Assembly: GCA_004764695.1 (NCBI GenBank)
Contig: SMSO01000037.1
Location: 720,747-784,746 of the forward strand
Length of the DNA: 64,000 bases
Reading direction: 5' to 3'
Source of the DNA: Schizochytrium sp. TIO01
Lineage: Eukaryota; Protista; Bigyra: Labyrinthulomycetes
Each line of letters opens with the position of its first letter. Position 1 is the first letter of the stretch. Below the pieces are notes generated by a model. It was not told the origin of the DNA. It saw only the letters and a list, made by a program, of their open reading frames with translations, and searched no databases. The position numbers were made by a program, and so were the translations under genes. This document shows, in pieces, positions 10,235 through 50,000 of this stretch.

Positions 10235-10818
10235 TCGCCTTTTTTCTATTACCAATGTATCTACAAATCATATGGTTAAGTGAGGTAACAATAGTACATA
10301 TTCGAACGATGCGATGGCTTCTAGGACCGACAAGGCAACTAACTCAATTCCTTTCGCTTGCTACCTACACGGTAGCTAGGCATTTCATACTTTGATACTA
10401 AAGTAACCCACAAAAAACACAATGCCAGCCGTCATTTATTACCTTTGATACCTATGAGAACTGGGGACAACCTTAAAGGTCCTCTTCATGGTCAACCATT
10501 GCCGATCAACGTGCTCGTTCAAGTTGAAACCCAAAAGTTGAATAGATTCTCAGTAGTTCTGTGGTCATCCTTCCCTGCAGGGTACTGGCAACGAAGTGTA
10601 TCAATTTGAGCATCCTCAAGTTGCATCACTTTCTCGGTGTTTTGCAGCTCGACCTTGGGCGACAGAAACGAATATGTATGCTCGAAATACATCCTCAAAA
10701 CAAGGTCCTCGCATTCCATCCAATCGCCTCTTCAGCTGCATTGACCGCCACGTTGGTGTTCTACTCGCCAACCTCTGCTGTGGCTTGGTTTCGCTGAGTT
10801 TGCGTGCAATTGAGAGGC

Positions 10819-24885: not shown

Positions 24886-27560
24886 GCTGCTTTTCGCATC
24901 GCAGGCCCGCTCTAGCTAGACCATCATGGGCATCAGCATCACCCTCCGAGCCATGACGAACTTCTTTGTTAATTTCATCATGGTATTTTTAAAAGCTGTC
25001 TAGGTCTCCTCGTCTGTGTTAGTGCTTGCATACTTAGCCAGTTTATAAGATTAAATAAAGTCTTTTCTTCTTCTTCTTTGCTTTACGAAATTGGCATAAC
25101 TTTGGAGATACTAGAACTAGGTACTATAGTAGTAGCAGTAGTAGGTACTACCTGCCCAGTAGAACCATCTTTCGGGTGTTTAGGTGATCGTAATAGATTG
25201 GACAGAACTCTGTGACCCTATGGAGGGAAACACCTACATAAAGGGTGATTCTTGAGTTAAGAGTTGACGTAATCGTAGTACTACGTACGTCCTGTGGACC
25301 TGTGCACTCAACATATAGTAATGCTAGAAAGTTGTTCAGGTTACAACGGCACAGTAGTCCCCCCCCACCTACATACAGTTATTTATTTCTCTTTCTTTAT
25401 TAAAAAATGAAATAAACAAATAAAATCGCAAGAATAATATTAATGTTATTAGGTGATGCTCTAGTCAGTTGCGTGTTCTAAGTCAAGACTGATACGAAGA
25501 GCGGTGTTGAAACTATCTGTGACTGAGCATCGCTGACTGAGTAGAGCTAATGGGGGGAACACCGAACGGCCTTGCTCAATATGTTCTGGAGTTTCGTACT
25601 ACCTTAGTATGCAGTACGAGATGTTTGAAGATAGTAAGTCAGAAGTGTTTTCATGAAATTTGCGATCTGACCCCCTTTGACGAAATTGCGGGGCTTAGCA
25701 CATACTGCTTGAAGCAAGTTATTTTATTTGCTTATCATGCGCGTATCCCTGAATTTCAACTCGATAGCATGAGTAGCATGAGCAGGTGAAGTACGCCTGG
25801 GCATAGATTAAGATTAGGGTTTAATTTTTAAAGATGAGGAAACAATCAGTCCCTAGAATGAGGTCGAATTTATTGCTTCAAAGACAAATAACCTCAAGTT
25901 GTGGAAGAGCTTGAAGCTCGAACTTCCCAGTCTCATTGTATAGTGTTGGTGCATGAATGTTTCTGGGAATAACTTCCTTCTCCTGACCACACCTCTCCAA
26001 AATCGGGAAGAAGGCCGATATTGTTCCTGACCAAATAAAGCTCTGAAGAGATATTGCAACTAAGTCAACCCAGCCATTAATGCTCGAGCGCCCATATTTA
26101 TTTTGCGCCCACGTAAAGCGTAGCAGGGCTTAGTCTTCTGCCTTTGTACGAGCGCACTTGGAATAACTTTTTATAGATTTATAAATGCTCGGTTGCTGCT
26201 CTTAATGCACGTCGTGGTATCCGTTAACAAGTTCTTCACGAAGGTATCTAGATTTCCTTACAAACTTGTGTGAAGAGCCCGAGCAACTCTTGATCTTTCT
26301 TCTAGAGCGCGCCGTGTACTGTTAATAAGGTCCAGCTAGACGATTCGATACTCTATAAATCGGATCATGCCAACACCAGCATTCGCTCGCACATAAATAA
26401 CGATGAAGGTTATGTTGTTACAGTTGTACTTCCCGGCACTGCTCCTGCAGGACCTATTGCAAACTTTCTTGCTCCGTATGGAATTTTGAAAGTCTGGATT
26501 CTCCTATGTGCAAACAGGGGGCTCGGACGCTAAACCAGCTTCCCAGGCTAGGGACAATTGTTCAGGTCGGCCCTGGCACAGCATCGCATGCTACTCTACG
26601 AAGAAGCAAAACATTAAACGGATATATTTTAAAACACACAAGAGATTGAACGAAACCGTGTACCCCTGAAAGGGCGGCTATACAAGGGTGCATGACATGC
26701 TGTGATTCGCTCGTACGTTGCTCTTCGATATCATCGCTTCTTTTCATGGGAGCAGCAACACCTCATCCATTTTCACAGCATGCAGAGCCCCTGCAACCGT
26801 TTTTACGTCTCTGTTTTCCATCTAATTCAAGAGAAATCAAGTTTTTAAATTCCTCTTTTATTACGGGAAGCTCATTCGTACTTCCCCCCTTGATGCTCAA
26901 GTTTCTGTAGGCACATTGATGCCTGGATTGCAGTGTGGATGAAGGATTGATGTTAGATTCATTGCCCATTGACCAAATATGGTGAAAAAACAGGAAACAG
27001 GAAAAAGAATGAGATATGCATTCAGATTGCGTTGCCAATAGAAAACAGCAGCTCAATGTGTGAAAATTCAAGTTTAAAAAAATAAACCCAACAGCAGAGA
27101 TAAGAGAGTTCGTTGTTTCTTACCCAAAGCTAGAAACTTTCGATAGGCTTGCGTTCGTATTTCTAGCTAGAGCGGTATTGTCTCTTTTTTGCTTTTTTAA
27201 TTTTTTTATTTTCTGGGGCTGCTTCAATCAACCAACTGTTTTCCTTACAGAAATTGCGCAAAATGCTAACTGTCAAGTACGCGAGGAGAACTTTCTGTAG
27301 ATTTGATACTAGTTATAGTAGTAGGTCACCACCCAACAGAATTCAGAAAACCAAAACACAGAATTGCAATGTTTCATGCAAAACCAGAATGCAAGCATAT
27401 CAACAAAAATAGTTGTAGTCTTTGCAGCTTTGCATTTCTCTAAAGGAAAAGAGAGACGATATACGAATACCAAAGCACAGCAAAAAGTTATGGCGTATGA
27501 AGATTAGGTATTGTATTTAGAAAGAAAAGAAAAGAAGACAAAAGCACTTGAATTTGTCAA

Positions 27561-28742
27561 ATGAGCAACGTGAGTAGTACTCTACTCTGCATCAACAGCT
27601 GTGGTCGCCATGGTACTTGCATCGATGATGCTTGCGTCTGCGATAGGTTTTGGACAGGAAAAGCAGATATGTTGTCATACGATGGGTATGACTGTACAAA
27701 CCTCGTGATTCTCGAGTCTTTCATATGGAGTATTGCGTTAGCTTCAATATTAAAACTTGTCTGGACTCATATACGAGCTTTTCGGGTTCAGCTTGCAGCA
27801 TATCGACGTGCAAAATCCAAGGTTGCAAGGAGGGGCCAAACACTTTACATGTGGCAGTTTACCCCGCTACGTCTGCTTGTTGCAGGCTTTTGCGCTATTC
27901 CAATCATGCTCACAGTGATCATTCCAAAAGCATTTTTATTAGAAGATCGTGAGCTAGGTCGCACGTGGAAGACAAGCGCAGCGTTCATAATTACAGTTCC
28001 ATTTGGTTTTATTGGAAATTTCATTGCGGAGATGTATTCGTTTGATACGCTTGCAAAAGGTTTACACAGCTCTCATCCGGAGCAAGCAGTTAAACTCCGT
28101 CGTCAGATTCTTTTTCAAAGTTCATTTGCAATAGGATCTTATGCATGCATAACAGCTGTCGCAGTAATATACGGCTGTACCCATACAATAACACACCCAA
28201 ACAAATCAGTCATGCGTTATATGCTTATTTTGCGAAATGGTGGCCTTATCTTGTATATGCAAGCAACGGGACTGATTGCCAGAGCCGCATCTAAGAATGC
28301 CAGAGCTCTGCTTCAAGGCTTATCAAATAGCGTACAAAGTGCCGAAACAATTAGAGCTCAAAATTTTTTGCGTCATTTTGAAGCTTTGAGTGCTGAGAAG
28401 ATAAAACTAGCAAAAGTTACGCTTGTACTTTACATTGTATTTTCGTTGCCGTGGCTCTGGCCATATCAAACATATCCTATTGCTCTGGTTTTTATTAAAA
28501 CCGGAGGCAAAGCTCATTTTGCGAACAGTTTTGCTGCTCCACGCCAGAAAAAGAATGGCAGTGTAAAGTATCAGAATGGTAACTCAGTTGCACCTTCATC
28601 TTCGAATGGTTCCGTCATTTCCATTAAGCAACCAGGAACTGACGCAGCATCTGTTGGGCCATCACACGACCCTGTCAAAACTTCTACTCTTGATCTCGAG
28701 AATCAAGGGAAGACTACCTCCATAGTTGGGGTTGAATCATAG
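27561..28742 (+). CDS. EGF-like + 7TM GPCR-like membrane protein, paralog 1 (393 aa)
   Basis: CINSCGRHGTCIDDACVCDRFWTG...YDGYDC, seven hydrophobic segments, FSLPWLWPYQT and a Ser-rich tail. Homologous to the three neighbouring genes. Confidence 0.85.
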   Translation: MSNVSSTLLCINSCGRHGTCIDDACVCDRFWTGKADMLSYDGYDCTNLVILESFIWSIALASILKLVWTHIRAFRVQLAAYRRAKSKVARRGQTLYMWQFTPLRLLVAGFCAIPIMLTVIIPKAFLLEDRELGRTWKTSAAFIITVPFGFIGNFIAEMYSFDTLAKGLHSSHPEQAVKLRRQILFQSSFAIGSYACITAVAVIYGCTHTITHPNKSVMRYMLILRNGGLILYMQATGLIARAASKNARALLQGLSNSVQSAETIRAQNFLRHFEALSAEKIKLAKVTLVLYIVFSLPWLWPYQTYPIALVFIKTGGKAHFANSFAAPRQKKNGSVKYQNGNSVAPSSSNGSVISIKQPGTDAASVGPSHDPVKTSTLDLENQGKTTSIVGVES

Positions 28743-29272
28743 TAGGAAAGTTAGCAAAGTTAAGACGCACGAGCATCAAATTAGTCTTTTAGGAGAAGCT
28801 TGAAAACTGAATATTATGGTTCGCTGAAGAGATAGCTTTCTCTGGAGGCTTTCTTTAGCTGTGTAGTGCGACTACACTCAAGTGCACCGTGCCTTGGATT
28901 GACACTGTCGCTGAAATAGACGTTAACTATTTTCCTTTCATATAGTAAAAAACAAGCATGTGATGACTAGCGAAATGAAGATAAACTTTTTTTTGTAGTA
29001 TCATTCCCCATAAATGCGCCACTTATCATTTAATTCTTGCTTTTGCTTGTAGTTGATTAGTAAATTTCTTGTACTGTTTATTAGAATTAACTCCCCAAGA
29101 TATGTTTCAGGCTACTATAAAATACAGCCTAGTCAAAGGATTAGTGGGCGTATGTTTAAGATAATACTTGAAGAACCTAAATCTATAATGTGCAAAAGAG
29201 AAGATTTTCACAGAATTTGTCTCTTGCTCCTGTAAATGCTGAAATCTGACAATATACTCGAAAAGAATGTGT

Positions 29273-30466
29273 TCATGGACATTGGCTGTGCTGAGATAAA
29301 TATTCGCTAGTATTTTGCAGTATAGAATTATTGGTGGTTTCAGCAATTACAAATGATTGTTCGCTAATCTGCGTTCTGTCATTCATGCTGCTTTCCTTGA
29401 TTGAGGAGAAGTGAAGACTATGTGGAAAACGTAATACAGACGCCAAAGGCGATACTGAGGGTAGTTTGGATGATCTCTTGCTGACCTTTTCCTGGGAGGC
29501 AAGAAACTGATTAATATAAAAGAATTTGGAAGTCAATAATAGAATTGCCAAGAAGGCCATTTGGATAGTTTGATATGGCCAGAGCCATGGCAAACTAAAC
29601 ACGATGAAAGAAATGGATACGCTAATTCCGGCACGAACTTTTTCTTTTGAAGAAGTCTCCAAATGTTCTAAAAGCGCAGCAATTTTTTTTGACGCGGGTG
29701 ATGTTCCTAGATCAGAGCTACCGCCTCGTAGACGCTTCACTTTACGAGCTACCTGCAGGGCAATTACGCCATGTGACATGAAGTATAAAACAACGCCTAG
29801 ATTTTTAAACACCAGCAAATATCTCATAGCCGACTTTTGAGGATTTGTAAGGTTCGCTTGAAAAAAGCATCCATATATCAATATAGGAAGCAGGATAATA
29901 GCATACATAATGTTTGCGAAACTTGTCTCCAGTATTAATGCTCGCCGCAAGCTTGCCGTGCTATGTTTTTGAGGGCCGAAGTCCAGTCCGGAAGATAACA
30001 CGTCAAAAGCTAAAAGCTCGGATTTGGAATTCCCGGCAAAATTTGCAGTACTGTATATCAAAAATGCTATTGACACGCCTATATCATAGCCAATTACTCG
30101 ACTTTCCATGTCAAAAACATGAAATATAGCAATCACGATTATAGAGCACAGTTGGAATTGTGAAATGAGGGAAAGCTGCAGGAATGGCGCGTCGCGATAT
30201 CGTAGTTTCTTTCCTTTTTTCGCAGCCCGATTTCTTTCATGTCGTAGTCGCGGAAGGTGTTTCACCATGACATATATGATTCGAAGCTGTGGTCTAAAAC
30301 CCACGAGCAGCACCACCGCCCACAATACACGCTCGAACGGCACATAAGTTACGCAATCAAAACCATCATAATTCAGAAAGTCTGTTTTCCCAGACCAGTG
30401 TTTGTCACAGACACAAGAATTGTCCATGCATTGCCCATGTGTGCCACAATCTTCGATGCAGACCAT
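29273..30466 (-). CDS. EGF-like + 7TM GPCR-like membrane protein, paralog 2 (397 aa)
   Basis: CIEDCGTHGQCMDNSCVCDKHWSG...YDGFDC, seven hydrophobic segments and FSLPWLWPYQT. Confidence 0.85.
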   Translation of the reverse strand: MVCIEDCGTHGQCMDNSCVCDKHWSGKTDFLNYDGFDCVTYVPFERVLWAVVLLVGFRPQLRIIYVMVKHLPRLRHERNRAAKKGKKLRYRDAPFLQLSLISQFQLCSIIVIAIFHVFDMESRVIGYDIGVSIAFLIYSTANFAGNSKSELLAFDVLSSGLDFGPQKHSTASLRRALILETSFANIMYAIILLPILIYGCFFQANLTNPQKSAMRYLLVFKNLGVVLYFMSHGVIALQVARKVKRLRGGSSDLGTSPASKKIAALLEHLETSSKEKVRAGISVSISFIVFSLPWLWPYQTIQMAFLAILLLTSKFFYINQFLASQEKVSKRSSKLPSVSPLASVLRFPHSLHFSSIKESSMNDRTQISEQSFVIAETTNNSILQNTSEYLSQHSQCP

Positions 30467-32218
30467 TCTGCGTCTCTAACTATAGCGAACTAAGTCGTGC
30501 GGGCCATCAATCCATTGATCTTAATCACGAATTTCCCTCTCAAAATTGTTTGATGTTTGCTGTACTTGCCCTAGTGAGTATTTGACCAAACCATGCTACT
30601 CCTCTCAGCTACGCAATATTATAGCCAACTCCAATCGCGTCCCCTCGCCATAGGGACTTCATTTCTAGTCGTGTTGCTTTCTATTTCTTTCATAATCAGA
30701 AAAGAATAATCGTTACCACAATTCGCAGTGTAGAACTCAAATTATCGAAACAGTTCATTTTTTTTTTTTTTTACGAATTGATAAAAGAAGGTATACCGTA
30801 GTCAAAGTCCTAGCTCCTTCTAAGCAGGCTCTGTCTTCCTTATGCATCAAAGTTGAAAATAGCATTCTGACGCTGTAGAAAAAAACAAACAAAAAAAAAC
30901 GATACGTAGCCAAGGACGCTCAGATCAACAAGCAGAGTTTGCCTGGCAGATATTTAAATCAGTGCAAAACCTTCTGGTTTTCTTATGGTCTCGCCTAATG
31001 AGTTTGTGATCTTTCTAGATTGAGTACAAAACGGACAAGATCTCGAAGCAGACGGGTAATCCGAGTGGGGTTCTGTATATTTATTAGATCCGTTTGCTTG
31101 TAAACCTAAACATTGAACCCTGATTATCTACTAGTATTTACTATAGCTATGAGTCCACACACCCATTACTTCTCATGGACGAATTGACACCAGAAGTAAA
31201 GTCCGAGCAGCGGGACAACATTGGATACTCGATTTGTCAAGTTGCTGCTCGTTGGCAAACGTAGTAGCTAGTGCCTACCTACTCGTATTAAGATCTATGG
31301 ATCACCTTAATCCGCTTAATAAAATTTGGTTCGATAAGTTGGCATTTTAACTGTTTCGTTGTTGCATATCTTCCAGCAAAGTCAACAGAATATCACTTCG
31401 ATCGGGAAAAGATGGCCAAACAGGGTCCAAGCTTTGTCCCAACCACCAAAAAAATGCAGGGAAGGGGGCGCCTTCACAGGTATCTTACTAACATCTATGA
31501 TATGAGTAAGTTCTAAGTCAGAAAGTATATATTTAAAACGGCATAGATTGCTATGCATAGCTTGAAATAACAACAACCGTACTTTGGTCAAACATATGGA
31601 AGACACCGAAGATTTATATGGTAGATATGATTTTAGTTACATTATTCTCAGAATTGCACAAAAGCCAATGTTTTCATTTTAATGAGAGAATGAACATTTC
31701 ATATTTTTTTTAATTGTTTTGATCATTTCTCACATCGACTGCTCGCACGTCTCTCAGGCGCACGTTGAAACGACCATTTGCTATCAGCTTCAGGAAGAAG
31801 TGGTATGTAAGGTCCTTGAGGTACAGTAATAAGAAAATGCCTACTGCGGACAGATACCATGTTATTCTCTTTCATTATCACAATGTGGACTTGCTACACG
31901 GCCAGTATACATCTATGTTTAGAAACAACAGTCAAATAAACAAACAACATCGCAAAGGAACAGTTAATTCACCCAATAATCGAGTAGTCTAATTCCTCAT
32001 ATCAGAAAATACAATCATGATCACAACATAAATAAACACCTGGACACTGTCCTTGCATCGACTGCGTGGCATCTTCTAAGCCGTTTTAACATCATCATGC
32101 AAGTTTGCTTGTTTGCTCTAATTGTGATCTGACTAAATACAAGTTTAGTCACTGTTAATGTATGGGTGTATGATAGTATATGGTATGGACAAATTTTATA
32201 AGCAACACGCGTATTTTG

Positions 32219-33853
32219 CTACTCGTCATCTAGCGTGGGGACTGACGAAGCTTTACCGCTGATCGCTGTATCCGTCATACCTCGAAGGAGCTGCGGAACG
32301 TTGGGCTCGAAGCGATGAAAAAAACGCAAACTTCTTGCTTTGGCGTGTAATAACCCATGCGTTTTATCAGCATCTTTGTGGATTTTAAGTTGTGAACTTG
32401 TGCCAACTGAGGCGCTTTCAGAATGCTGTTCGGATATGGCATCTATTGGGTCATGCTCTTCATTATTAGGCATAATTTCAGCCGTATCAAAAAAACTATT
32501 AGATTTCATGCTCGCATCGGAAAGAAACTGGCCTTGCATATAATTGATGTCATCCCGACTTGATTGCAAGTTTCCATGCAACACGTTGAATTTCGCCGAA
32601 AGTATACTGTCGTGAATTGTTATATGAGATTTGCCAGAGTTATGTTCGCTTAGCCAGTATGCACTTCTCGTGCTGCGGTCTAAAGTAGAGAAGCGTGGAG
32701 CATCAGACAATCTGGAAGGCAAAGCGGCAGCAGTTGCCTGGTCTCCATAATTTGACGATTGGCTTGATAAATCTGTCTTGGTAGGAATTTCTTCACTTTG
32801 CTGCCCTAAAACTTTCACAAGAGATATTGCAGGTAATGAAGAAAAAGCAGAAATTCTTGAAGTCTTGACCGTGGTTGAATCTGGTACCATAAACTGAAAT
32901 ATAAAATGCAACTTCGACGAAAAAATCTTAGTTACAGCAACGCTTACCAAGACAGTTTGGTAAGGCCATAACCAAGGTAAGGAGAAGATACTGTACAGAA
33001 TGAACGTAATGAGAGCAGTCTTTTTTTTCTCTTGGACAATTGTAGAAAGCCTGTCAAGAAATAGCTCAATCTGAACGGACGAGCCTTGAGAAGATTGAGT
33101 TTGCTGCAATTCATTTTGGAAAGCTTTAATTCGCTTTGAGGTAGCAATACTTTCTGCCAGATTTATAAACATATAGAGCTGGACACCGAAATTTTTCATA
33201 GGTATTGAAATTGCCACAAATGAATTGTTTGGGTTTGTATTCTCGGGAGCGTATGCAATACCGGCTATCAAAGAGACAGATGTCAAGACAAAGTAAATAA
33301 GCACGGATCCTCCAGTTGTTAAAATCATTTTCCACCGAATTTGATTTTTTGATTTTGATTTACCTGCTAGTTCTTCACCTCTGAATAAAGCATCAAAGCT
33401 GAGTACCTCTGCCCACATATTTCCTATAAAGCCAGCTAAACTTGAAATTAAAAAACAAATAGAAACAACAATGCCGCTGCCAATAAGAGAGTCGTCACTT
33501 TGAGCAAGTTTTTTTACAGCGACAACCATCATCGTGAGGGGTGAAATCTGAGCTATTATTCCAAGCTGAACAAATGGGTTCGAACGATAGTGAAGTTTCT
33601 TATGTTGCCTGGCAGCTGCTCGTTTTCGCCGCCAAAACTTAGGAAGCTGTATTGAGGCTGCACAGAAGATCCTGTACTGGAGCAGAATATTTGCAGCTAG
33701 TACAATTGCCCACAATGAAATGTTCAATGGTATGAAGTTGTCACAGCTCCATCCCTCATAGTTAATAAAGTCTGAGCGTCCAGACCATAACTCATCGCAA
33801 ACGCAACTCCCATCAATGCATGTGCCATGTTGGCTGCAGCTAATAAGGCACAT
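32219..33853 (-). CDS. EGF-like + 7TM GPCR-like membrane protein, paralog 3 (544 aa, long C-tail)
   Basis: CLISCSQHGTCIDGSCVCDELWSG...YEGWSC, seven hydrophobic segments, FSLPWLWPYQT and a ~220-aa Ser-rich tail. Confidence 0.85.
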   Translation of the reverse strand: MCLISCSQHGTCIDGSCVCDELWSGRSDFINYEGWSCDNFIPLNISLWAIVLAANILLQYRIFCAASIQLPKFWRRKRAAARQHKKLHYRSNPFVQLGIIAQISPLTMMVVAVKKLAQSDDSLIGSGIVVSICFLISSLAGFIGNMWAEVLSFDALFRGEELAGKSKSKNQIRWKMILTTGGSVLIYFVLTSVSLIAGIAYAPENTNPNNSFVAISIPMKNFGVQLYMFINLAESIATSKRIKAFQNELQQTQSSQGSSVQIELFLDRLSTIVQEKKKTALITFILYSIFSLPWLWPYQTVLVSVAVTKIFSSKLHFIFQFMVPDSTTVKTSRISAFSSLPAISLVKVLGQQSEEIPTKTDLSSQSSNYGDQATAAALPSRLSDAPRFSTLDRSTRSAYWLSEHNSGKSHITIHDSILSAKFNVLHGNLQSSRDDINYMQGQFLSDASMKSNSFFDTAEIMPNNEEHDPIDAISEQHSESASVGTSSQLKIHKDADKTHGLLHAKARSLRFFHRFEPNVPQLLRGMTDTAISGKASSVPTLDDE

Positions 33854-35097
33854 CGCATTACCTAAACAGATGTGATCATTGATTTTGCTGCAATCGATCA
33901 GGTGTCAATAACAAAGTAGCTACTTTTACTTTTAAGTTTACAGGATGTACTCCTTGTATCTCATTCTCACAAGGTCACTTGGAACGTTGTTCCTCGATAC
34001 AAGGCCTTACGCACAATCATATACAAAGAGACCGTACGATTAATCAATATCACTCGTATACAATAAGAATATAGTATAAGCAGTTTATCTGTTATAAAAA
34101 GCAGAACTATGGGGCAAAACAAAATAATGTGAATGTGTTTCAACGGCTCTCACGTTGACAATCACAATGATGCCGAAGGACGAACATGCCCCCTCTCTCA
34201 ATATAGAACGGAGATGTGCAACCAGCTAGGGCAGAGAGAAACTTATATTGATCGTGTTTCTGGAAATAATTAAGGGAAGGTTCTGGATACAAGTTTGGAT
34301 ACAAGTTTGAGTTCAATGTTGTCTTCTTCAACTCTCGGAACAGAACAGAACCAGCCATATTTTGATTCTTACCGCTAAATTTCTACCCTATGGTATGAAA
34401 AGGAGAAGCTTTTCTTTGACTGACTGACTAGCAGACGAATTCGCCAGCTCTGAAAGTAATCAAGTGACCCACAAATATGAGTAATCAATTTTATCTATGC
34501 GTCGTCACGGTCACCTATACTTAGGGTTAGGCTGAAAATTGTCGTTAAATAGTTTTTAATGATTAATGTTTACATGTAAACATTGAGCATTATTTTTGTT
34601 ATCTCATACAAACCATCATGCCAAATAAACGAACAACCTTAGCGAGAACCTTCTAACACGCATAGCGGCCTAACTACGCACTTTAAGATTATCTCTCCGA
34701 TGTTGCAAGGCTTCTTATTTACATGCCTGATATTTCATCTTATTGTTTTTTGTTTTCGTTTTTGTTTTGTCACTTTTTCTTAGTCAATTAATTTTAAAAT
34801 AGTTTTTTTTTTTTTTTAAATTGGATTACTCACTCTCAAAGCCAGAGATAGTAGGAAGCAATATGCCGTGGCATGTATTTGCATTTGGAAGTATTAGCCC
34901 AACTTTTCCGAAATTGGGCCCTGTCGGTAGACTTGCCAAAACGAGCATGCCCTTGGTAATGCAAGCTGCCTGCTTATATCTTAATTATCTTAACTAAAAA
35001 GACCAATGTAGCAACAGTCCTCGTGCCCCTAACAACGTTGAATGGACAAGAGCATTCAGAGAATACACAAAGTTTAAGAGATTAGTTCCTAAATAAT

Positions 35098-36330
35098 CTA
35101 GTTAGAATCTTTAACGGGCAATTCTTCACCAGTATTGGCATTAGAAACTGGAAACACTTCAATATTTCGCTCCTCTTCTACATTGTTATTAACTTTTGCA
35201 TGTTCCTCAACCGTAACGATGCTTCCTTTGTCTTCATTCTCTAATGCCAAAACAGAAACATCTGTTTGTTCGGGGTGTACAGATATAGAGCTTGGCGACA
35301 AGGACTTCCGAGCTAAGCTACTACTGAGATAACGCTGTTCTTGTTTATCTCCCTTGCTACGCTTGCTATAGTTACATACGTAGTGGGCTCGCGAGCTTCC
35401 TAACTTAAAAAGGAGGAAAGCCATTGGAATACCTTGATAAGGCCATGCAAATGGAAAACAAAATGTCCCGTATAAAAGACAAGCAACTACTGAGGTCTTG
35501 ATTTTTTCTTTTGCGTTTTGGCGCATGTGTTCTAAAAGAATTTCTGTTCGTGCGTTAGAAGCGTCGCTCTTATTTGCTGACGAGCGTTGATCAAGCAATG
35601 ATTTGGTAGCTTTTGTTGTCTGCTTTGCCAAAATCGCCATCCAAATTAAATAACATGTAATACTCAAGTTACGAAGAATCAGCAAATGCCGAACAACAGA
35701 TTCTCGCGGATCTGGAACCGGGTCTCCAATAACAAGACTGGAAAAAAATGCAGGCGCAGCACCAAGGCTGTAAAGAGTTACAGCAACATAAGCCTTGCGA
35801 AAAATGCTCTTTCGAAGTTTCTCTGCGTCAGATGGTTTAACTGATGTAACTCCTTGCATAAGCGTAATAAAACTGGACTCTTCAGCCATGATATTTCCCC
35901 AAAACTGTACAGAAGCTGCTAAGTAGAAGGTTATTGTTAAAAGAGGGTCATGTCCAATCACACGATATGGAGTGAGAGCCACCTTGAATGGAACTGAAAT
36001 ATACAAAATGGTTGGGGAGAATTGAGCGATCACAACAAGCAAAAGTGGCCTAAACTCCCACCACCGGAGCTTAGTTCCACGCTTTGCGGCTCTCTTTTTG
36101 AGCGTGGAAAAGTTACCCCATTGGTTTAGGAAAGCTTTGATGATTCGAACTTGAAGAATGCACATACCAACTAACGTCAGGCTCCAAAGGCTAACATTCA
36201 ATGGTTCAAATGCTGGACATGACCATCCATCATAATTTAAAATATCGGTTTTACCCGACCAAAATCGATCACAAACACAGACATTTTCTTCACAATGTCC
36301 ATGTTTTCCACAAAAAGATTCATCACACAT
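35098..36330 (-). CDS. EGF-like + 7TM GPCR-like membrane protein, paralog 4 (410 aa)
   Basis: CDESFCGKHGHCEENVCVCDRFWSG...YDGWSC, seven hydrophobic segments and FCFPFAWPYQG. Confidence 0.85.
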   Translation of the reverse strand: MCDESFCGKHGHCEENVCVCDRFWSGKTDILNYDGWSCPAFEPLNVSLWSLTLVGMCILQVRIIKAFLNQWGNFSTLKKRAAKRGTKLRWWEFRPLLLVVIAQFSPTILYISVPFKVALTPYRVIGHDPLLTITFYLAASVQFWGNIMAEESSFITLMQGVTSVKPSDAEKLRKSIFRKAYVAVTLYSLGAAPAFFSSLVIGDPVPDPRESVVRHLLILRNLSITCYLIWMAILAKQTTKATKSLLDQRSSANKSDASNARTEILLEHMRQNAKEKIKTSVVACLLYGTFCFPFAWPYQGIPMAFLLFKLGSSRAHYVCNYSKRSKGDKQEQRYLSSSLARKSLSPSSISVHPEQTDVSVLALENEDKGSIVTVEEHAKVNNNVEEERNIEVFPVSNANTGEELPVKDSN

Positions 36331-38353
36331 AATCTGTGACAGAAGGAAGCGGCCTCTATTCGATCTTGTGTTTCGTTCGAATGGTAAGCTGGAAAGCGAT
36401 TGTGCTCTTTAGTTCAGACTTTACTATTTGTTGTGTTAAGCCTTGAAGCGGCTCAGTTACACTCTATGTCTATTTTGTATTTAGACTCAAAGATTAAGTC
36501 ACCTAGTAATGTGCCTAGAGCTATGGATACGCAAATGACATTCCATAGTTCGGATTTTGCATGCTTCAGCTGTAGGCGAACGGAAGTCCTCCAACGCAGT
36601 TAAAAAAAAATAAAAATATTTATGTCTGTGTGGTCTCATTTTGGAAATCTTACAATAGCTAGAAAGTGGGGCGAAGAACATTTCTTTTAGGGCTGCACTG
36701 AACTCAACACTCATTAGATCCTCGTTTTGGTGTAGAATGATTACCAGCCTTGTATTTCTCTTTGGCTTGTCCGTTGCCGAACCAAAACTTGACTTGCAAT
36801 AGTGAAATAGCGTTTTGTCTCCATTTTTCTTGCCCTTCTAAACTAACATAGACAGAAATGACGGAGAATGCCTGAAACGGGTTCTGTGTGTTGAATGTTG
36901 GGGGGTGTTGACTTGGATATTCGTCAGAGAACCACATAATAAGGAGCTGTGCAATTATCTGGAGTACTCCCAATGGCTTTGTCATTCTTCCAATGCAGTC
37001 CAATTAGGATCAACACTAATTCATATAGTTTCTAAATTACCAATTAGGGCATTGTGCTGGAGTGGGAGATCATAGCCGCGAACTTAGCCGGATCCTTTAA
37101 AACTTTGGATAGGAAATCAAGTCGCTGGGAGGTTCGGCTGCAACATTCTAATTGAACAAATAGGGCACAGGAACAAGGCTGCCGGGCAAATTGAATGATG
37201 GATACTGTTCGAGGTTGTTTATTGATAGAGCACATATAAATTGTGTTTTCTGTGGATCACGAGGACAAGTGTCGGATATCCATGTACTTACCCTTGCTTT
37301 GCTATATTCGTGGAGGGGTCCAACTCGTTTCCCCAGTTTACACGGACAGAAACTCAAAAACAACGAATGGTACTTCTACGAATGATAGCAGAAATTGATT
37401 CACCACACATAGGTTCGACAGGGTTTCTCAGATCAAACATTTCGTGAATGAAAACACTTTTGAGTATTCCATAACGGATTTCTATAGATTCCTCGCTACG
37501 TTTCCTATCCCTCATTCCCTACTACTTCCCTTACTACTAATAGACCATCAGTGTAGCAAGGCAATGGGCTTCAACTTAGTGGAAATGCATGCAAGTATAG
37601 CTACATTTAATGCAACAACTGATAACCTTTGAATTACGTGACTTCACAATACTTTAGATTCTCTGAAACATTTTGAGAATATGAAAAATAAATCAGAAAC
37701 AAATTTGTAATTTTAAAAAATCATATCAAAAGACAAGACAATCTCATCATGGATACGCTGCTACCATGTGTGACATCGCTACTGATACGATTTGGTAGTT
37801 CGCCGCAGTTTGCAGAAGCTGGCCTCTTCATTTGCATATAAAGGAGACGAGAGTTTCTGATTTAGTTTTTTTTTTTTTAAATCATAGAAGGCAAAAGGAA
37901 ATTTGAAAAGAAAGTTGCCTAGTTCCACTCCGAGGTAGAATCAGGGAATACACACCTGTCCGTTAAATTATCTGTTCAAACAAAAATGTATTGAGAGACG
38001 CCAAAGGATATTTGGCATTATTGCAGAGAAAGAAAGAAAGCAAACAGCCACTAGTATGTATGCATACTGGAGTGAGTGGCCTACTAATCTATTGCACAAT
38101 ATATACTTGCAGTAGGGTGTGAGTTAGCATCAAGTTTTATCACTATATCTGTTCTAGTGGCATATTTTATGAATATTGGCAGCACGAATATAAATATATA
38201 TAGAGAGAGAAAGACCTAGCTTTGTTCTGCCAGGAAATCGAACAGCCTGTTTACTGACCAGTCTTGCTCCTTGAGGCATCTCTTTGCGGAACCAAACAAG
38301 CTCGCGTGGATGCTTTCTTGAGGTTGAATCGAGCAAGCGAGCACCAAATTACC

Positions 38354-41300
38354 ATGAGCCGACTTCTCCAAGAGTGGCTTGACCGAGATGTGCAGCTCAG
38401 TCGTTCAGTTGGTGGTTCTTCTCAAACTCTTGGTGCGGCATTTTCGAATGGCTATTTGCTAGGGGAGTTACTCTATCGACACAACCAGCAAGATGACTTT
38501 GACAAGTTTCACGACAGTGATCGAGTGCAAAAAAAGGTTGCTAACTTTATACGCCTCGAACGAACACTTTCGCGACTTAACATCAAGAACTTTGACGCTA
38601 GAGTCGCGCTGCGTATGATCAATGGTGATGATAAAACATGTTTTGATATTCTTTACAAAGTCAAAATGGCGCTTCAAAAGATTACGGTGACCGTCGGGCG
38701 TCATCGTGACGAGGGCCTAGTTCCCGGTAGTTTGGTTGCATTGACAAATCTGGCTCAGCAGACTAGAAAGCCAGCTTACGAAGAAGCAACATCTGATGTG
38801 TTTGCCAAGACTTTACGACAGCAGATAACCAGTCAAAATCAGATTGATATGGAGGAGCATTTGCAGCCGTTTTATGACGAACGTGCACGCCAAGACGCCT
38901 ATGTAGAATTCTGTAAGCGTGAAGACCAAGACATGCTTGCGATGTACTTCAGCGAGATTCGAAGACGCCGCATGATGGATAAGAAGGCAGAGCTCGAATA
39001 TCTGAATGATTGGAATGAAAAAGGTATTGGGATTTGGACGGAGAACCAGCGCCGGCGAAAATACATTAATGAGGTGCAAGCTCGATATGAAGAACGTGTT
39101 AGACTGGGACAAACTAGCCGAGCAGAGCTAGCTAGAGAAGAAAGCCGCGACTACACCTTTCGCGAAATCGCAGATATGGAGGAGCGAGTGGAAGCCCACC
39201 AACGTGATCTTGCTATTGTGAACGGCGGAGACATGAGCGGTGATACTAGCTCAGACAAAGTCTCTGGAGATGGCTGTCTTGTGGATCAACAAGGGTACAC
39301 AAATAATTGCTCAGAACCTAAAATTAAGCGCCGACGCCAAGAAACACAGGCAGAGAAAGAAACTCGTGATAGTCGTCGATCGCGATTTCTGGACCGTCTG
39401 GGCATTGAGAATGAGAATTTCCTTCACGACAAGCGCATTGAACTTCTACAAAATAGTATTCTTCGCAGATCGCATGCAGAAGAGCATCTCAAAGGTAGTT
39501 TACAAAAGCTGGAAAAATTCGAAACGGTCGTTCGAGACAATCGAAAGCATCGTGAAAAAATGGACAACGACCAAGAGGCCTTAGAAGAATCTAGATTCGA
39601 GGAGCGCAAGCTTGAATATGAATCTAACCTGGAAGCATCGGCCAAAAGCAACATTAAGTGGTTTTCAGCACAGTTGGAAGCTCTCAGGACGTCTGTACAT
39701 GCTGCCGCACATGCTGATGCGGTTCAGTTCTGTAAAGGTGTAGTGTTAGAACTCGTTGAGCTTTCACTATCTCAGATTGAACTTTCTCGGTACGAAGGAG
39801 TACCAACTAAACTAAACGAACGAAAGGTCGATGAGATTGTAAAATTTGTAGAAGGCTCTAAGGATGCAGCTGACTTGTATGACTACATCAATGACGAGCG
39901 TACTTGGGGGGGCATTCAACGGAATTCATGCTCAAGACTTATCGGCAATCTTCTCATCCCCTTGCGTACAGCTGCATTACCTCCGCCTCCTGTTCAACAA
40001 CCAGTTGTGCAACGGCGATTTCGTCTTCAACTTGCACTTGTGGGTCCACCCTATGCACATAAAACGACTATGGCTGTCCGGCTTGCTTCACGATATAGTT
40101 TACGAATCCTGCAGCCTGAAGCATTCTTGAGGTCTTATATCAATAAAGCTGAGAAGCTGGAAAACGGTGAGCCATTTACGGATGAGGACTACGTCGAAGC
40201 GTGTGCACAGGCAATTTTAAAGCTTGAAAAGGAAGTTGCTTTAGAATGCGCATTAAGTGAGGAAAGTGCTTCAGATGGATTCACAAACAATAGTGTCAGC
40301 TCATCAAGCAGTGCCCATGTATCGTTTATTTCTTCCGAAGATCGAGTCCGTCAACTCTTCGACCGATGGGATCTTGACAAATCAGGTGATCTCGATGCAC
40401 AGGAGCTGCTTAAAGCAACAATGCAAGCCCACTGCGAAGGTAAGTCCCAAGCCGACATCGAAGCTGAGGCTCTCGAAGCATTTGCACAAATGGATTTCAA
40501 TATGGATGGTAGCATCAGCTGGGAAGAATTTCAACAGTACTTTGCAAGCGTCTTTGGAGAACACACCCAACAAGTAGTTTTAAATTTGCTTCACCAATCG
40601 AATCAAGCCTCCAGAGAATGTCAAGGCTGGATTCTTGATGGATTTCCGTTCAACAAGAACCAAGCATATCTTCTTGAGGCTAGACTCTCTGGGAAGAATG
40701 CAGATGCACTAGAATACCAACCACCACCAGCTTTATCACTACCTTGCGATTCGCCAAGACCATTAGATAAAGCTCAATTCCAGGGAGCTAATGCGGGTGG
40801 GCTCGACCAAGTATTTTATTTAGCAAGCTCCTTGGAATCTACTTTCTACAAAGCCGCCCATGCTTCAACAAACCCACTCGAGCGCTTCCGAGTCGTGCCA
40901 AAAATCTATGTTACTGAACGTGACATCAAGGATGTGCAGCAATGGTATGACTGTTTTCAGATTTTCCAGACGATCAACACAAGTAACATTGACCCTGACT
41001 CTATTTTTGTGGCGCTTACGCATCATGTTGAAAGAACTCTCACACAAAAGCTCTCAATTGAAGCTGACGAAAAGGCAAAAGCTGATCACTTGGTCCACCT
41101 TGCTAAGTGTAGACGTATTTGCGATGACTGGCTTTCGGCTGTTTCACATCGACGACAAGAGATCTCGTCAGATACAGAGGGGTTTGGAGATGCTGGAAGA
41201 CCATTAGATAGTGACAATGGGGAGGCACCTCTTCCGAGAATTATTGATGTACCTCCATTAGATTTACACTCTCTTAAGGCCGCCAAGGTGTTACCTGATC

Positions 41301-42985
41301 ATGTGATGGAAGAAAACGTTGATCTATCCAATCCAGAGACTTTCATTGGCCTGCTCAGCATGAAAGTTGATGCATGCCTTGCTCAAGCCACAGCCTACAG
41401 AGAGACTAATTCTGCCCGTGCAAGAGGTATTGTTGAGTCCTATGCAAGCGCTTTGGCTTCAGAGGGTGTGGAGTGGGACTCTGTACAGCTATATGAACAA
41501 TTTAAAATCGCACTACCTGGAGATGGTGAAGCCCCAGAGGATTTGGATGGCACAGAACAGTATCAAAAGGCAGCACTCGAAACTGAGCTTCAAGACAACG
41601 ATGCAAAAGCGGATGAGGTTGAAGCGGAATCACTTGCAGCTGGCGCAGCAGCGAAAGCAAAGAGGCTTAACATGGAAAAGGCAGTTGTAAATCTACTTTG
41701 GCATGCCCAAAGGTACCAAAAACAGCAAGACTCAATTCAACAAGTATCCAAGGATGATCTTAGTAATGTTGGGGAGGAAACTGAAGGAAATTCCCAAGGG
41801 GAAAAGCAAGTTGATAAAGTTACCCATTTGGATCCTTTGACAATAGTTCTTAATCATCTTCAAGCTCACACTGATGAGCGCATTACGGCACATCGTACTG
41901 TTCTTCTTGAGCAGGCGAAGAAATCCAAACCCAAGGGAAAAGACACTCCAGTTAAGCAGACAACTCAACAAGATGAAACGACTACATCTCCACCCGTGGT
42001 ATCTCAGCTGAAGCTTAACGAGATAAATCAAGCTCTTGCCTCAAAACTAATCGCAGGAATTGACACTTCTGATACCAAATTTGCATCAGGTGCTCGAGAG
42101 CTTTTCGCAGAACTTAGAGAGATTAGAAACTACTGGGTAGAGTATTTCACTTTCGAACGGTCCTCACTTGACAAAAAGCTTCGAGATGTAGCTAGTGAAG
42201 AAGAACGATCCGAACTCGTTCAAAGTTTCAAAACGAATCTAAATTCTCTTGCAGAAGATGCGCGATATGATCCACAAACCAAAGCAGAACTCCATGTGAG
42301 AATTGAGGACCTTGTTCAAAAGCTGTGGCTCCAGTCAGAAACTCGCAAAACAGAACTTCTGGGTTCCATTGAGGCACTAGAAGAAAGTCAATGCGTGCCG
42401 ACTTTTATGGCTCTTGTTGAGGATGCGTTTCTTCAAATTTTACAAATTGAAGCTGTCCGATTTCAAGAAATGCATTATTATATCATCCAGACTGATCGTG
42501 TTCTTAAAGGCGAGGATGTCGGCGATGAACTATCTGGTCCTAGTCTTGTATGTATTTCCTCCATATTTCGTGGCATAGCTGATGAGCCTCCTAAGGGTAA
42601 GAATGCTGTACCAGAACCACGTATACCAAAGGCATTTAATGATGCACGACTCATTCTGCCTGCTCCTGAGGCATCAACTGGTGGCGGAGATCCACCTCAA
42701 GAAGCAGAATCAAATGAGTTGTCTGAGGCAATTATCCAGTTGCGACTTCGCTTCCATGAGAATGTGGACCGCTTGGAAAGGCAGCTGAATGAAAGTCTTT
42801 ATAAATTGGAGCTAATCGCAAAAGAGCAGCGCGAAGGTCATCGAATGCGCATAAATGAGCGCTTTGATGCTGAACAAGTTGCAGTCGAAGCAATGGTACT
42901 ATACATCTCAACTCAAGTTGAAAATTCTGACATCTTAGCAGATTCGATGACTCTGGAAGGCGTCTGCTTTTCAGCCCCTAAATAG
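38354..42985 (+). CDS. SPEF2: Sperm flagellar protein 2 / CPC1-like central-pair protein (CH domain, coiled coil, adenylate-kinase-like domain, EF-hands)
   Basis: MSRLLQEWL...AFSNGYLLGELL..HNQQDDF..F...NFIRLERTL matches the SPEF2 N-terminal CH domain. Degenerate P-loop GPPYAHKTT, GWILDGFP, TKAELHVRIEDLVQKLW and two EF-hand loops. First ATG is at 38354. Confidence 0.85.
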   Translation: MSRLLQEWLDRDVQLSRSVGGSSQTLGAAFSNGYLLGELLYRHNQQDDFDKFHDSDRVQKKVANFIRLERTLSRLNIKNFDARVALRMINGDDKTCFDILYKVKMALQKITVTVGRHRDEGLVPGSLVALTNLAQQTRKPAYEEATSDVFAKTLRQQITSQNQIDMEEHLQPFYDERARQDAYVEFCKREDQDMLAMYFSEIRRRRMMDKKAELEYLNDWNEKGIGIWTENQRRRKYINEVQARYEERVRLGQTSRAELAREESRDYTFREIADMEERVEAHQRDLAIVNGGDMSGDTSSDKVSGDGCLVDQQGYTNNCSEPKIKRRRQETQAEKETRDSRRSRFLDRLGIENENFLHDKRIELLQNSILRRSHAEEHLKGSLQKLEKFETVVRDNRKHREKMDNDQEALEESRFEERKLEYESNLEASAKSNIKWFSAQLEALRTSVHAAAHADAVQFCKGVVLELVELSLSQIELSRYEGVPTKLNERKVDEIVKFVEGSKDAADLYDYINDERTWGGIQRNSCSRLIGNLLIPLRTAALPPPPVQQPVVQRRFRLQLALVGPPYAHKTTMAVRLASRYSLRILQPEAFLRSYINKAEKLENGEPFTDEDYVEACAQAILKLEKEVALECALSEESASDGFTNNSVSSSSSAHVSFISSEDRVRQLFDRWDLDKSGDLDAQELLKATMQAHCEGKSQADIEAEALEAFAQMDFNMDGSISWEEFQQYFASVFGEHTQQVVLNLLHQSNQASRECQGWILDGFPFNKNQAYLLEARLSGKNADALEYQPPPALSLPCDSPRPLDKAQFQGANAGGLDQVFYLASSLESTFYKAAHASTNPLERFRVVPKIYVTERDIKDVQQWYDCFQIFQTINTSNIDPDSIFVALTHHVERTLTQKLSIEADEKAKADHLVHLAKCRRICDDWLSAVSHRRQEISSDTEGFGDAGRPLDSDNGEAPLPRIIDVPPLDLHSLKAAKVLPDHVMEENVDLSNPETFIGLLSMKVDACLAQATAYRETNSARARGIVESYASALASEGVEWDSVQLYEQFKIALPGDGEAPEDLDGTEQYQKAALETELQDNDAKADEVEAESLAAGAAAKAKRLNMEKAVVNLLWHAQRYQKQQDSIQQVSKDDLSNVGEETEGNSQGEKQVDKVTHLDPLTIVLNHLQAHTDERITAHRTVLLEQAKKSKPKGKDTPVKQTTQQDETTTSPPVVSQLKLNEINQALASKLIAGIDTSDTKFASGARELFAELREIRNYWVEYFTFERSSLDKKLRDVASEEERSELVQSFKTNLNSLAEDARYDPQTKAELHVRIEDLVQKLWLQSETRKTELLGSIEALEESQCVPTFMALVEDAFLQILQIEAVRFQEMHYYIIQTDRVLKGEDVGDELSGPSLVCISSIFRGIADEPPKGKNAVPEPRIPKAFNDARLILPAPEASTGGGDPPQEAESNELSEAIIQLRLRFHENVDRLERQLNESLYKLELIAKEQREGHRMRINERFDAEQVAVEAMVLYISTQVENSDILADSMTLEGVCFSAPK

Positions 42986-47003: not shown

Positions 47004-50000
47004 TTAGATGCGTGCTAACATGGGAAAATCAGCCACTGAAGATGTCGTGCTTGATGCTGTCGTGCCACGGTGAATACGAGGACCTCTTAAAGAGTCAACC
47101 CGTCTGACAAGTTCGTGAAGATGATCCCTACTGTTGAAAGGAGGAAGCAAAGTTACAAATGTTTCGATTTTGCGCTCCTGGCCAATTCGCTTTGGACATT
47201 CTTTGCGATGTGTTGTGAGAACTCCCCAATCCTTGAGGGTTTCAACTGCATTTTGCAGGGTGACCGAGGCACAACTTTCGTAGTGAACAATTATCTGGTC
47301 ATGATATAAATTTTCTGCGAGCGTGAGCATACGCTGGATTAATGTAGCTATCTCCACCTTGGCATCTGGAAGAAGAGCAAGAAGCGCAGACACTGCCACA
47401 AAATAACTATCAATCAAAGGCCATACCATGGAACACAAAAGGCTATAGACTCTTTCAGCATCTGAGTGCTCTCGAGCCACCCTCACTTTTCCATCTTTAG
47501 CAATCTCAATTATATTTCGATCTTGCAGATCTAGCAAGCTATCTCGAACATCCCGTGGAGTCCGAATAAACTCTCTACGTAGCAATGATTCCAGAAGTAG
47601 AGCATCTTCTTGTACAAACTCAAGGTCTGCGAGGCCAGTACTAGAATCAGTCCGAGCATAAAGGCCACATGCCCAAAACCCTTCCGAGGCAAACAAGTGT
47701 ATGATTTTGTTTCTATAATAACCCAAGATAACCATTTTATGATAGTCTTTGGTTGCGCTATCAACAGCAACTTGCACGACACGAGGAGATTGACGTCTTT
47801 GAATAGTATCGCCTAACAGATGCATAGCACGTTTGACCAAGTCTGTGCGATCCTCACCTTCAGCGCATGCCACATGACCACCTCGCCGCAGCACTTCCTC
47901 CCGAAGCCATTCAACACTGGATGCCAACTGGTCTAATGTAAGACCATGCCGATATGTTAATAATAATGTTGCCACGAGATGAATCGGCATGCAGACTGCC
48001 GCTCCTTGCATTGCATGTATAATCTGTAAGCCCAATGCTCGGGCTGGAGATACAGCAGGAGTAGCTCGTTGCAGCTCCTGTCGGGCCATAATATGTTCCC
48101 CAAACTGCACTGAGATATAGCCAAAACTTTTACCTAGACGAAGCATGGACTTGAGAAGGTTCTCGGTTGTTTCTGGCATCTTTGAGGAGCCAAGCATCTC
48201 ATGTGAATAAAGAGTTGCCTCTACAGGCTTTTCATAATCAATGGAAATCGGGACGAAAATAAGGTCTTGCAGCCGACCATCACGTACGGGCTCAATGCAA
48301 ATGCTAGTGAGGCCAGATTTTGGATCTAGGCATTTGCCACTGCGGCTTCGTGTACCCTCAATGTAATACTCGACAATTTGACGGTCCACGAGAAGTTGCT
48401 GTGTATAAGCCGTAAATACTGCTGCGTAAAGGGGATCCTTTTCCAAAGCACCTTGACGCCGTAGAAAGAATGCACCCGCGGACCGCAAGATTCCAGAAAC
48501 ACCGTTCATTTTTAAGAAATCTGTAGTTGATGCAATAAAGGGAACTGGGAGATTGAAAGCAAACATAAGAAAGGAGAGCATGACAAAATCGACATAGCTC
48601 CGGTGTGTAGGAACCAAAACAATTGGGTATTGCGCCGCAGCAGCTGCTGCACGTAAATGCTCGAGCCCCTCTTCATGCACGCGAATTCCATCATACATTT
48701 TGCGCCAGATCTTACGCAATGCCCACCCAAGCCAGCGAGGTGGACCATCCACCAAGGTGCTGGCTATTTCATCAAAAAGCGCATTGGCCCGAGCTAACAC
48801 TTTGGCTCTTGCAGATGATCGCGAACGCAGTGATGCATCATTTGTAGATGGTGAAGAGCCGCTTATTGTCTTCGAAGAGGACTTGCACTTTATTCGACTG
48901 AGCTCTGCCTTGAGTTCATCTTTGATCGCTGCTTTTACCTTGTTTGACCTCATCACAAGTGCGCGCATGGCCTCAGGCGAGCGTTTGGTAGAGCGAGGTA
49001 CATGCTTTGCTTCATGAGCGAGACCCTCACGCCAACCTGTAAGACCCATTAGCCGTCCTAAAACACCCGATCGAGTATATCCAGGCTTGCGACTAGAAGT
49101 ATAAGCCCACGAAATATCAGACATCATTCCAGGAAAGCTTATGCGGTGGTGGTCAGGATCCCACTTGAGTAGCCTGCCAAGGGTTAAACTCACGTCGTTG
49201 TGGGTGACTGCACTTTGGCTGATAGGAACAACATTTTCATTAAGAATAAAACGATCGAGACCGTAAGTGTAGTTTTCAATATATCGAGTCCATACGATGT
49301 CTAAAGCATTGACGCAGAGCTTATTGGTTCCATAGTCTATAGTTGGTACCATCGGTATAGAGCCAGGAGATTGTCCATCACGAAGAGTCTTATCTTCTAA
49401 AGACCAACGCTTAGCAGTGCTGCAGTCAAATATGTATTCGACAGTGGTAAAAGGCTCAAAGAGGCTAACGAGATACTCAGCACGGTCTTGCAACATTTGG
49501 AGCTTATTGGCAAGTTTTGCGGCATCACCACCACCGAATGCTGCTATTCGTCCATATGCCCAGGTGGGTAGTGAGTAGCGGAGTGCCCATTCTAAAGCAA
49601 ACTGCTGTCGGTTTTGCAGCATGCGAAATTTTACTGGACCAGGCGTAAGTTTCGACGCTGGCTGCTTGTTGCGATATGATGCAAGAACGCTATTGGAAAC
49701 AACACGCCAACGGCATGGGTTGAAGGCTGAAGAGCAGCTGTGCGATACTTGAAGATCGCCTTGGCGGTCCCACACCGATACACACGCGCGCAACATATGA
49801 TTTACGACAAAGTCCACTGGAATAAGAGCGGCTACACCTCTCGGATTTCCAGGGAGCATTGTGACAACTCCTAAAATAGTCCCCATGAAGACTGCCGATG
49901 CTGCACTGACAACATCCACCCAGCCTGGACATGGCTCGCGCCATGCAGCACCGACAATAGATGGACGTACTATTGCTAGGGGCACATCTCCATGGCGTCT

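Follow-up and report, generated by a model that had tools for sequence, protein, structure and literature searches.

We analysed a window of 64,000 nucleotides (nt) from the labyrinthulomycete Schizochytrium sp. TIO01 (contig SMSO01000037.1, positions 720,747 to 784,746). Besides ordinary eukaryotic genes, one of them encoding a P4-ATPase, the window contains a cluster of four intronless open reading frames (ORFs), here called genes 1 to 4 (Table 1). An earlier note, written from the sequence alone, had described them as four proteins of one architecture, an epidermal growth factor (EGF)-like module followed by seven transmembrane (7TM) helices. Their coordinates are exactly as given there, and the four products share the EGF module and the seven helices. 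Pairwise identity is 30-34% over approximately 330 residues, with 48 invariant columns in the alignment, among them six cysteines within the first 40 residues. All motifs listed in the note are present in the alignment of the four, namely F-x-G-N-x3-E-x2-[SA]-F, [RK]N, EK-x-[KR] and F-[SC]-[LF]-P-[WF]-x-W-P-Y-Q. The same holds for the basic stretch downstream of helix 1 (in gene 3, for example, RRKRAAARQHKKL) and for the Ser-rich tails, which are divergent and not alignable.

Table 1. Genes of the EGF-7TM cluster and predicted parts of the gene 4 protein (positions in the window; aa, amino acids)
Feature	Position	Strand	Description
Gene 1, EGF-7TM protein	27561..28742	+	393 aa, intronless ORF; most divergent of the four
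Gene 2, EGF-7TM protein	29273..30466	-	397 aa, intronless ORF; convergent with gene 1
Gene 3, EGF-7TM protein	32219..33853	-	544 aa, intronless ORF; tail of ~220 aa
Gene 4, EGF-7TM protein	35098..36330	-	410 aa, intronless ORF; the one modelled
Gene 4, EGF-like module, residues 1-40	36211..36330	-	Cysteines C2, C7, C13, C18, C20, C38
Gene 4, seven-helix bundle, residues 42-312	35395..36207	-	Predicted from AlphaFold2 model mb09040ce8ae3, fold matches and the positive-inside rule
Gene 4, cytoplasmic tail, residues 313-410	35101..35394	-	Ser-rich, predicted disordered, not conserved

The four genes are very probably real and transcribed. The assemblies of three public sequencing runs are of transcriptome size (35-41 Mb, as compared to 62-66 Mb for DNA-sized runs), and because their contigs cover genes only, in three studies, we infer that these runs are RNA. 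Gene 3 contigs cover 31764-33907 only and gene 4 contigs extend from 34885 to beyond 36449, both without splice joints. The intergenic stretches 30650-31650 and 34050-34850 are free of contigs in all three transcriptome-sized runs. In runs X1 and X2 contigs end at 30536-30537, approximately 70 nt upstream of the gene 2 ATG. One of those of run X1, 3366 nt long, aligns at 30450-30536 with its end reaching 30536; judging from its length it would span approximately 27171-30536 and cover genes 1 and 2. The run X2 contig at gene 4 continues 383 nt past window position 36449. The region at approximately 36331-36832 would be either a 5' leader of gene 4 of at least 500 nt or another, abutting transcript; no plausible coding ORF is found upstream of gene 4. 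Outside the window, a complete MMETSP transcript is matched at 99% identity by one paralogue, which lies on another contig. All 6 differences between strains that fall into the core (codons 1-320) are synonymous, as compared to 4 of the 12 in the tails, where 8 are non-synonymous (one-sided Fisher p ~0.011, hand-calculated and based on few differences in total). The EGF module and 7TM core thus appear to be under purifying selection. The view that these are open frames arisen by chance, or dead genes, has next to no probability left. Nothing was found in its favour, the borderline Pfam EGF scores of single proteins (see below) being all that could be quoted for it, and it is ruled out by 313 public homologues, syntenic orthologues in Hondaea, the gene-only contigs in three runs, the synonymous-only differences in the core and a confident structural model.

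The N-terminal module of the family is an EGF-like domain. Its cysteine pattern is C-x4-C-x5-C-x4-C-x-C-xn-C, with columns conserved to 85-100% in an alignment of 122 relatives. In gene 4 the loop between the fifth and sixth cysteine is unusually long (17 residues) and bears a G-W-x-G-x-x-D motif. Taken singly, the window proteins give borderline Pfam matches to EGF_Teneurin and EGF_2, EGF_Teneurin scoring 24.4-24.6 bits against a cut-off of 24.3. At the level of the family the matches are clear: EGF_2 and EGF_Teneurin are found in 42 of 54 relatives at E up to 10 (best E 2e-7) and in 35 and 31 of them, respectively, at E<=0.01. A family profile built from the 122 sequences matches solved EGF modules with E 2.6e-9, the best match in the PDB being a tubular mastigoneme protein from a stramenopile, with reelin and teneurin next. 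The six-cysteine module which the earlier note had placed at the extreme N-terminus is therefore confirmed, at residues 1-40, by these family-level Pfam and PDB matches. The whole ectodomain measures only 40-90 residues across the family. Ten long relatives contain no domain beyond the EGF module, with the exception of one Durusdinium model fused to a WS/DGAT acyltransferase, which is probably a merged gene model.

An EGF module of the disulfide type requires that the N-terminus faces outwards. Signal peptides are clear in members with longer N-terminal extensions (paralogues L005, L011 and L012) and absent from members with 40-65 residues ahead of helix 1. From established knowledge of membrane protein insertion, such a pattern would arise if short N-termini rely on helix 1 as a reverse signal anchor. 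A hidden upstream exon encoding a signal peptide was found at neither gene 3 nor gene 4; at gene 3 the contigs reach no farther than 42-54 nt upstream of the ATG and show no joint, which argues against such an exon.

Gene 4 was modelled with AlphaFold2. The mean predicted local distance difference test score (pLDDT) was 72 with 13 paralogues as alignment and rose to 84 with the 122 relatives (predicted template modelling score, pTM, 0.78), residues 10-320 scoring above 90. The model consists of two beta-hairpins forming the EGF module (strands 11-14 and 17-20, pLDDT 94-96), seven helices (residues 42-83, 94-117, 129-160, 166-201, 213-250, 256-289 and 293/300-312) and a disordered tail with pLDDT below 55 from approximately residue 330. 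Only some three residues lie between the last EGF cysteine and helix 1. Lysine and arginine average 18.3 on the predicted inner segments versus 5.3 on the outer ones, and 121 of the 122 sequences obey the positive-inside rule. The proposed 7TM topology with the N-terminus outside is thus upheld by the predicted helices as well as by the charge asymmetry. In two fold searches with VIA-align, all 50 matches listed are 7TM proteins; the matches listed by Foldseek are almost only G-protein-coupled receptors (GPCRs), their E-values being weak (best 3e-3). The model accordingly resembles GPCR/rhodopsin-type bundles, the best matches being class D Ste2 (7ad3), class T TAS2R14 (8xql), class A PAR1 (9d4z) and AT2R (6jod) and the microbial rhodopsins 7ytb and 9jtq. 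Like these, the proteins have seven predicted helices, the N-terminus outside, the C-terminus inside and a basic inner face; like many GPCRs, they also have long extensions of helices 5 and 6 and a Ser-rich tail. Unlike a clear member of one GPCR class, they match no class distinctly better than the others. A GPCR/rhodopsin-type fold, as the earlier note had supposed, is therefore predicted at this general level, with fold matches exclusively to 7TM proteins.

The model also allowed the motifs to be placed. In gene 4, F-S-L-P-W-L-W-P-Y-Q runs from the end of helix 6 through outer loop 3 into the start of helix 7, and the RN motif lies in the outer third of helix 5. The motifs of helices 5 to 7 exist as described, but the interpretation of the helix 6/7 motif as a TM6 proline kink does not hold, as this segment is extracellular in the model. 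Three of the four proteins of the window carry a lysine about midway along helix 7 (K309 in gene 4), which might suggest retinal-binding, opsin-like photoreceptors. This idea is very improbable and the opsin-like lysine was rejected, as the residue is not conserved in the family: across the 122 relatives the column is mostly L, A, I or V, with lysine outside the six commonest residues, and gene 2 lacks it. Moreover, there is no Pfam match to bacteriorhodopsin or other rhodopsins, and neither an aromatic pocket nor a counter-ion is found among the conserved positions.

Conservation across the 122 relatives, defined as one residue in at least 55% of the sequences, is concentrated on the outer side. 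The conserved positions comprise the six cysteines and the G-W-x-G-x-x-D motif of the EGF module; at the tops of the helices W49 (helix 1), P107 and K116 (helix 2), T132 and F135 (helix 3) and P194 (helix 4); G126 and D128 in outer loop 1 (R-x-G-x-D); and Y287, F290, P293, L295, W296 and Y301 at the top of helix 6, in outer loop 3 (P-x-L-W) and at the top of helix 7. This suggests that the EGF module and the outer loops form one conserved unit. The pattern is opposite to that of class A receptors, in which conservation lies in the core and on the inner face. The parallels to class A receptors drawn before, an acidic residue in lower TM3, E-K at the inner end of TM6 and a proline in TM6, do exist in the subfamily of the window, but they are traits of this subfamily only and fail across the family, where the conserved residues are all on the outer side.

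A conserved outer face suggests a conserved partner, and the nearest relatives of the EGF module (tubular mastigoneme proteins of stramenopiles, reelin and teneurin) are extracellular structural proteins. Both observations would suit proteins of cell-surface adhesion or recognition, whose EGF module would attach to other cells, to matrix or to substrate, the 7TM part being mainly an anchor. We consider this improbable. A single EGF module of 40 residues lying flat on the membrane would make a poor adhesion arm, and the purifying selection on the seven-helix part exceeds the needs of an anchor. Furthermore, such a role overlaps with that of a receptor rather than excluding it.

No description of this family was found in full-text searches of the literature, and Pfam and PDB profile comparisons bear out the claim that no characterised family matches it. 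In searches of the four window proteins and 54 relatives at E up to 10, no match was obtained to GAIN/GPS or to any 7TM Pfam family, including 7tm_1 (class A, PF00001) and 7tm_3 (class C). Class A chains in the PDB are matched with E 0.04-0.9 only, and the class A motifs E/DRY, CWxP and NPxxY are absent from the alignments. Adhesion receptors of the EGF-TM7 type (EMR/CD97, class B2) are alike in having EGF outside and a seven-helix bundle. Unlike them, the present family has one EGF module joined straight to helix 1, mostly lacks a signal peptide and has neither the GAIN/GPS autoproteolysis domain nor a 7tm_2 match, so the distinction from adhesion receptors drawn in the earlier note was correct. 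The only strong 7tm_2 match in the genome is a cyclic AMP (cAMP)-receptor-like gene elsewhere, with one weak match at another locus; neither belongs to the family.

TMEM8/PGAP6 proteins of the CREST superfamily have an EGF-like module followed by a 7TM hydrolase domain, and CREST proteins carry conserved His, Asp and Ser residues in the membrane core. The position of the EGF-like module directly ahead of the seven helices is shared with TMEM8/PGAP6. A CREST hydrolase was nevertheless rejected, as the 122 relatives show no conserved polar residues in the core and there is no Pfam match to CREST. THH1/TOM1/TOM3, GPR137 and PRRT3 resemble the family in size and in being plain 7TM proteins of protists and plants, and a protein-language-model atlas gave them feature scores of 0.77-0.87, which count as a lead only. 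This kinship was likewise rejected: hhalign against the TOM1/TOM3-like family of the same genome gave probabilities of 4.5% and 0.3%, hmmscan found no PF06454 match in the 54 relatives, and these families lack an EGF module. TOM1-like genes occur in the genome at loci of their own. In the class C receptors mGlyR/GPR158 and GPR179 a Cache domain sits on an EGF-like module just above the 7TM part (bioRxiv 10.1101/2025.04.15.649019). The family shares with them the EGF-like module directly above the bundle; unlike them it has no Cache domain, and the lack of a 7tm_3 match together with an ectodomain of only 40-90 residues sets it apart from class C. A recent survey of protist GPCRs mentions EGF only within class C ectodomains. 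Taken together, the family is undescribed; it belongs to the 7TM receptor-like fold and is unusual for its minimal EGF ectodomain.

A search with a broad family profile revealed at least 20 members in the 64-Mb genome, mostly in tandem clusters. Besides the four genes of the window, contig C34 carries a cluster of four, and C33 carries both a head-to-head pair and another cluster of four that is more divergent; there are also several single loci. One member (C30:4359431-4360460) aligns to the profile as two segments that lie in different frames (positions 5-193 and 189-340 of the profile) and may represent a frameshift, a pseudogene or the only intron-bearing member. Six paralogues of a second clade (L008-L013; C34:3117070-3164662 and C33:4043309-4051404) carry at the very C-terminus an acidic run and then [E/N/G/D]-Y-V, for example EEYV or DDGYV, an ending absent from the four window genes. 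It could be an endoplasmic reticulum (ER)-export signal or a PDZ-binding motif.

An exhaustive search of public data with a HMMER profile yielded 313 cluster representatives at E<=1e-3, a number that falls to 101 at E<=1e-10. Word-indexed searches with gene 4 or with a profile of 54 sequences were nearly empty, which reflects a limit of the word index. Most relatives derive from unnamed marine and environmental assemblies. Named relatives are proteins of Hondaea, two proteins of the dinoflagellate Durusdinium trenchii and one of Paulinella micropora, the taxon range resting on four named species. Full-length matches to the broad profile were given by the proteins of Durusdinium and Paulinella, none of which was in the profile. 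The family is therefore not lineage-specific, as had been assumed. A protein atlas further points to clusters from haptophytes, ciliates and oomycetes, which are leads only.

Local expansion, the second evolutionary assumption of the earlier note, did not survive comparison with Hondaea fermentalgiana. The protein GBG27494.1 of this species (760 aa, annotated as hypothetical protein) consists of two tandem EGF-7TM genes merged in one model, which lacks the second copy's EGF module. Its N-terminal half is placed by a maximum-likelihood tree as sister to gene 4 (support 100/100; 47% identity) and its C-terminal half as sister to gene 3 (support 98/90), gene 1 falling outside the clade of genes 2, 3 and 4. 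Genes 3 and 4 thus each have an orthologue in Hondaea, and the order, gene 4 and then gene 3, is the same in both genomes. Tandem orthologues in conserved order indicate that the cluster is old and not a recent local expansion. Identity between the orthologues is 47%, as compared to 66% for a TOM3-like 7TM protein, and from these comparisons the cluster appears to consist of old, fast-evolving paralogues.

Our favoured reading, to which we give a probability of about one half, is that the four genes encode EGF-capped 7TM cell-surface receptors of an undescribed family in protists of the stramenopile, alveolate and Rhizaria (SAR) group. Helix 1 would insert as a reverse signal anchor, followed by the strongly basic cytoplasmic stretch. 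Since the conserved residues all lie on the outer face, our proposal is a fixed cap, formed by the EGF module docked onto the outer loops. It would recognise a conserved partner outside the cell, or else it would itself serve as built-in lid or tethered ligand. Inside the cell, the variable extensions of helices 5 and 6 together with the phosphorylatable tails would register movement of the bundle. The output might pass most obviously through one of the approximately 13 G-alpha proteins or else through other partners of the variable inner face. A sensory task in zoospores, such as the chemosensing suggested in the earlier note, would be a further conjecture. The genome contains approximately 13 full G-alpha genes, several of them clustered at C30:1577709-1603772. 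Co-folding of gene 4 residues 1-340 with one of these G-alpha proteins, a single pairing, gave a score of 0.12 relative to a mark of 0.34, an outcome by which coupling is neither favoured nor disfavoured.

Several points weigh against this reading. Localisation in the plasma membrane is an assumption, and the docking of the EGF module on the loops is deduced from conservation and model confidence. No sequence profile ties the 7TM part to any GPCR family. The cytoplasmic half, where G proteins or arrestins would dock, contains no position that is conserved family-wide in the 122 relatives. Moreover, the genome encodes at least 37 class C (7tm_3) receptors of 800-1300 aa, many in tandem and separate from the family, which could already serve the G-alpha proteins. 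The argument that the genome has many G-alpha proteins but few receptors was dropped once these genes had been found. In addition, there are two class A-like genes and one cAMP-receptor-like gene.

Some of the same evidence would suit non-signalling 7TM proteins of the endomembrane system, that is cargo receptors or proteins handling lipids or ions, with the EGF module facing the lumen, after the model of the GOLD-domain 7TM proteins TMEM87 and GPR107/108 or of Wntless. Conservation on the lumenal or extracellular rather than the cytoplasmic face is consistent with such a role, as are the lack of a GPCR family profile match and the acidic Y-V ends of several paralogues, which resemble ER-export signals. 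We regard this as a less likely explanation, holding perhaps a minor share of the probability. The proteins have no GOLD domain, and TMEM87A obtains a fold score no better than that of GPCRs. Surface receptors, more typically than housekeeping proteins of membrane traffic, form large tandem families that diverge fast and have phosphorylatable tails, and orthologues from sister genera share less identity here than do those of the TOM3-like 7TM protein.

Within the reading as cell-surface receptors, a further step would be to regard the family as a new GPCR class of stramenopiles, alveolates, Rhizaria and perhaps haptophytes, in which a docked single EGF module serves as lid or tethered ligand. 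This we put forward only tentatively, as a doubtful extension. If true, activation by a lid or tethered ligand would be a principle distinct from the GAIN/Stachel mechanism that adhesion GPCRs use, in a compact architecture with one EGF fixed on the bundle. Surveys of protist GPCRs rely on Pfam 7TM families and a family without a profile is therefore invisible to them. In this genome it is the second-largest 7TM family found, after class C, and hundreds of relatives occur in marine sequence data, including those of dinoflagellate symbionts of corals and of Paulinella. If they are receptors, a sizeable sensory repertoire, hitherto unknown, would be added to ecologically important marine protists. 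Among thraustochytrids, Aurantiochytrium is genetically tractable.

The signalling repertoire of the genome is large for a protist. At another locus, a class C-like 7TM gene without a large ectodomain (L019, 527-1768; C31:8100026-8101267, minus strand; 413 aa) lies head-to-head with the EGF-7TM paralogue L005, approximately 2.4 kb apart. In the window, a gene at 38264-42985 (+) for a flagellar central-pair protein of the CPC1/SPEF2 type (CH_2, EF-hand and SPEF2_D5 domains) adjoins the cluster; it fits a flagellated zoospore stage, with no functional link to the cluster shown. At 47004-50858 (-) a fusion of 1284 aa combines a fatty acyl-CoA reductase (NAD_binding_4) with an acyltransferase of the GPAT/DHAPAT type, which suggests ether-lipid synthesis. 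A second fusion, at 9059-10255 (-), joins a gamma-glutamylcyclotransferase to a methyltransferase (Pfam GGACT, 6.6e-18, and Methyltransf_11/25).

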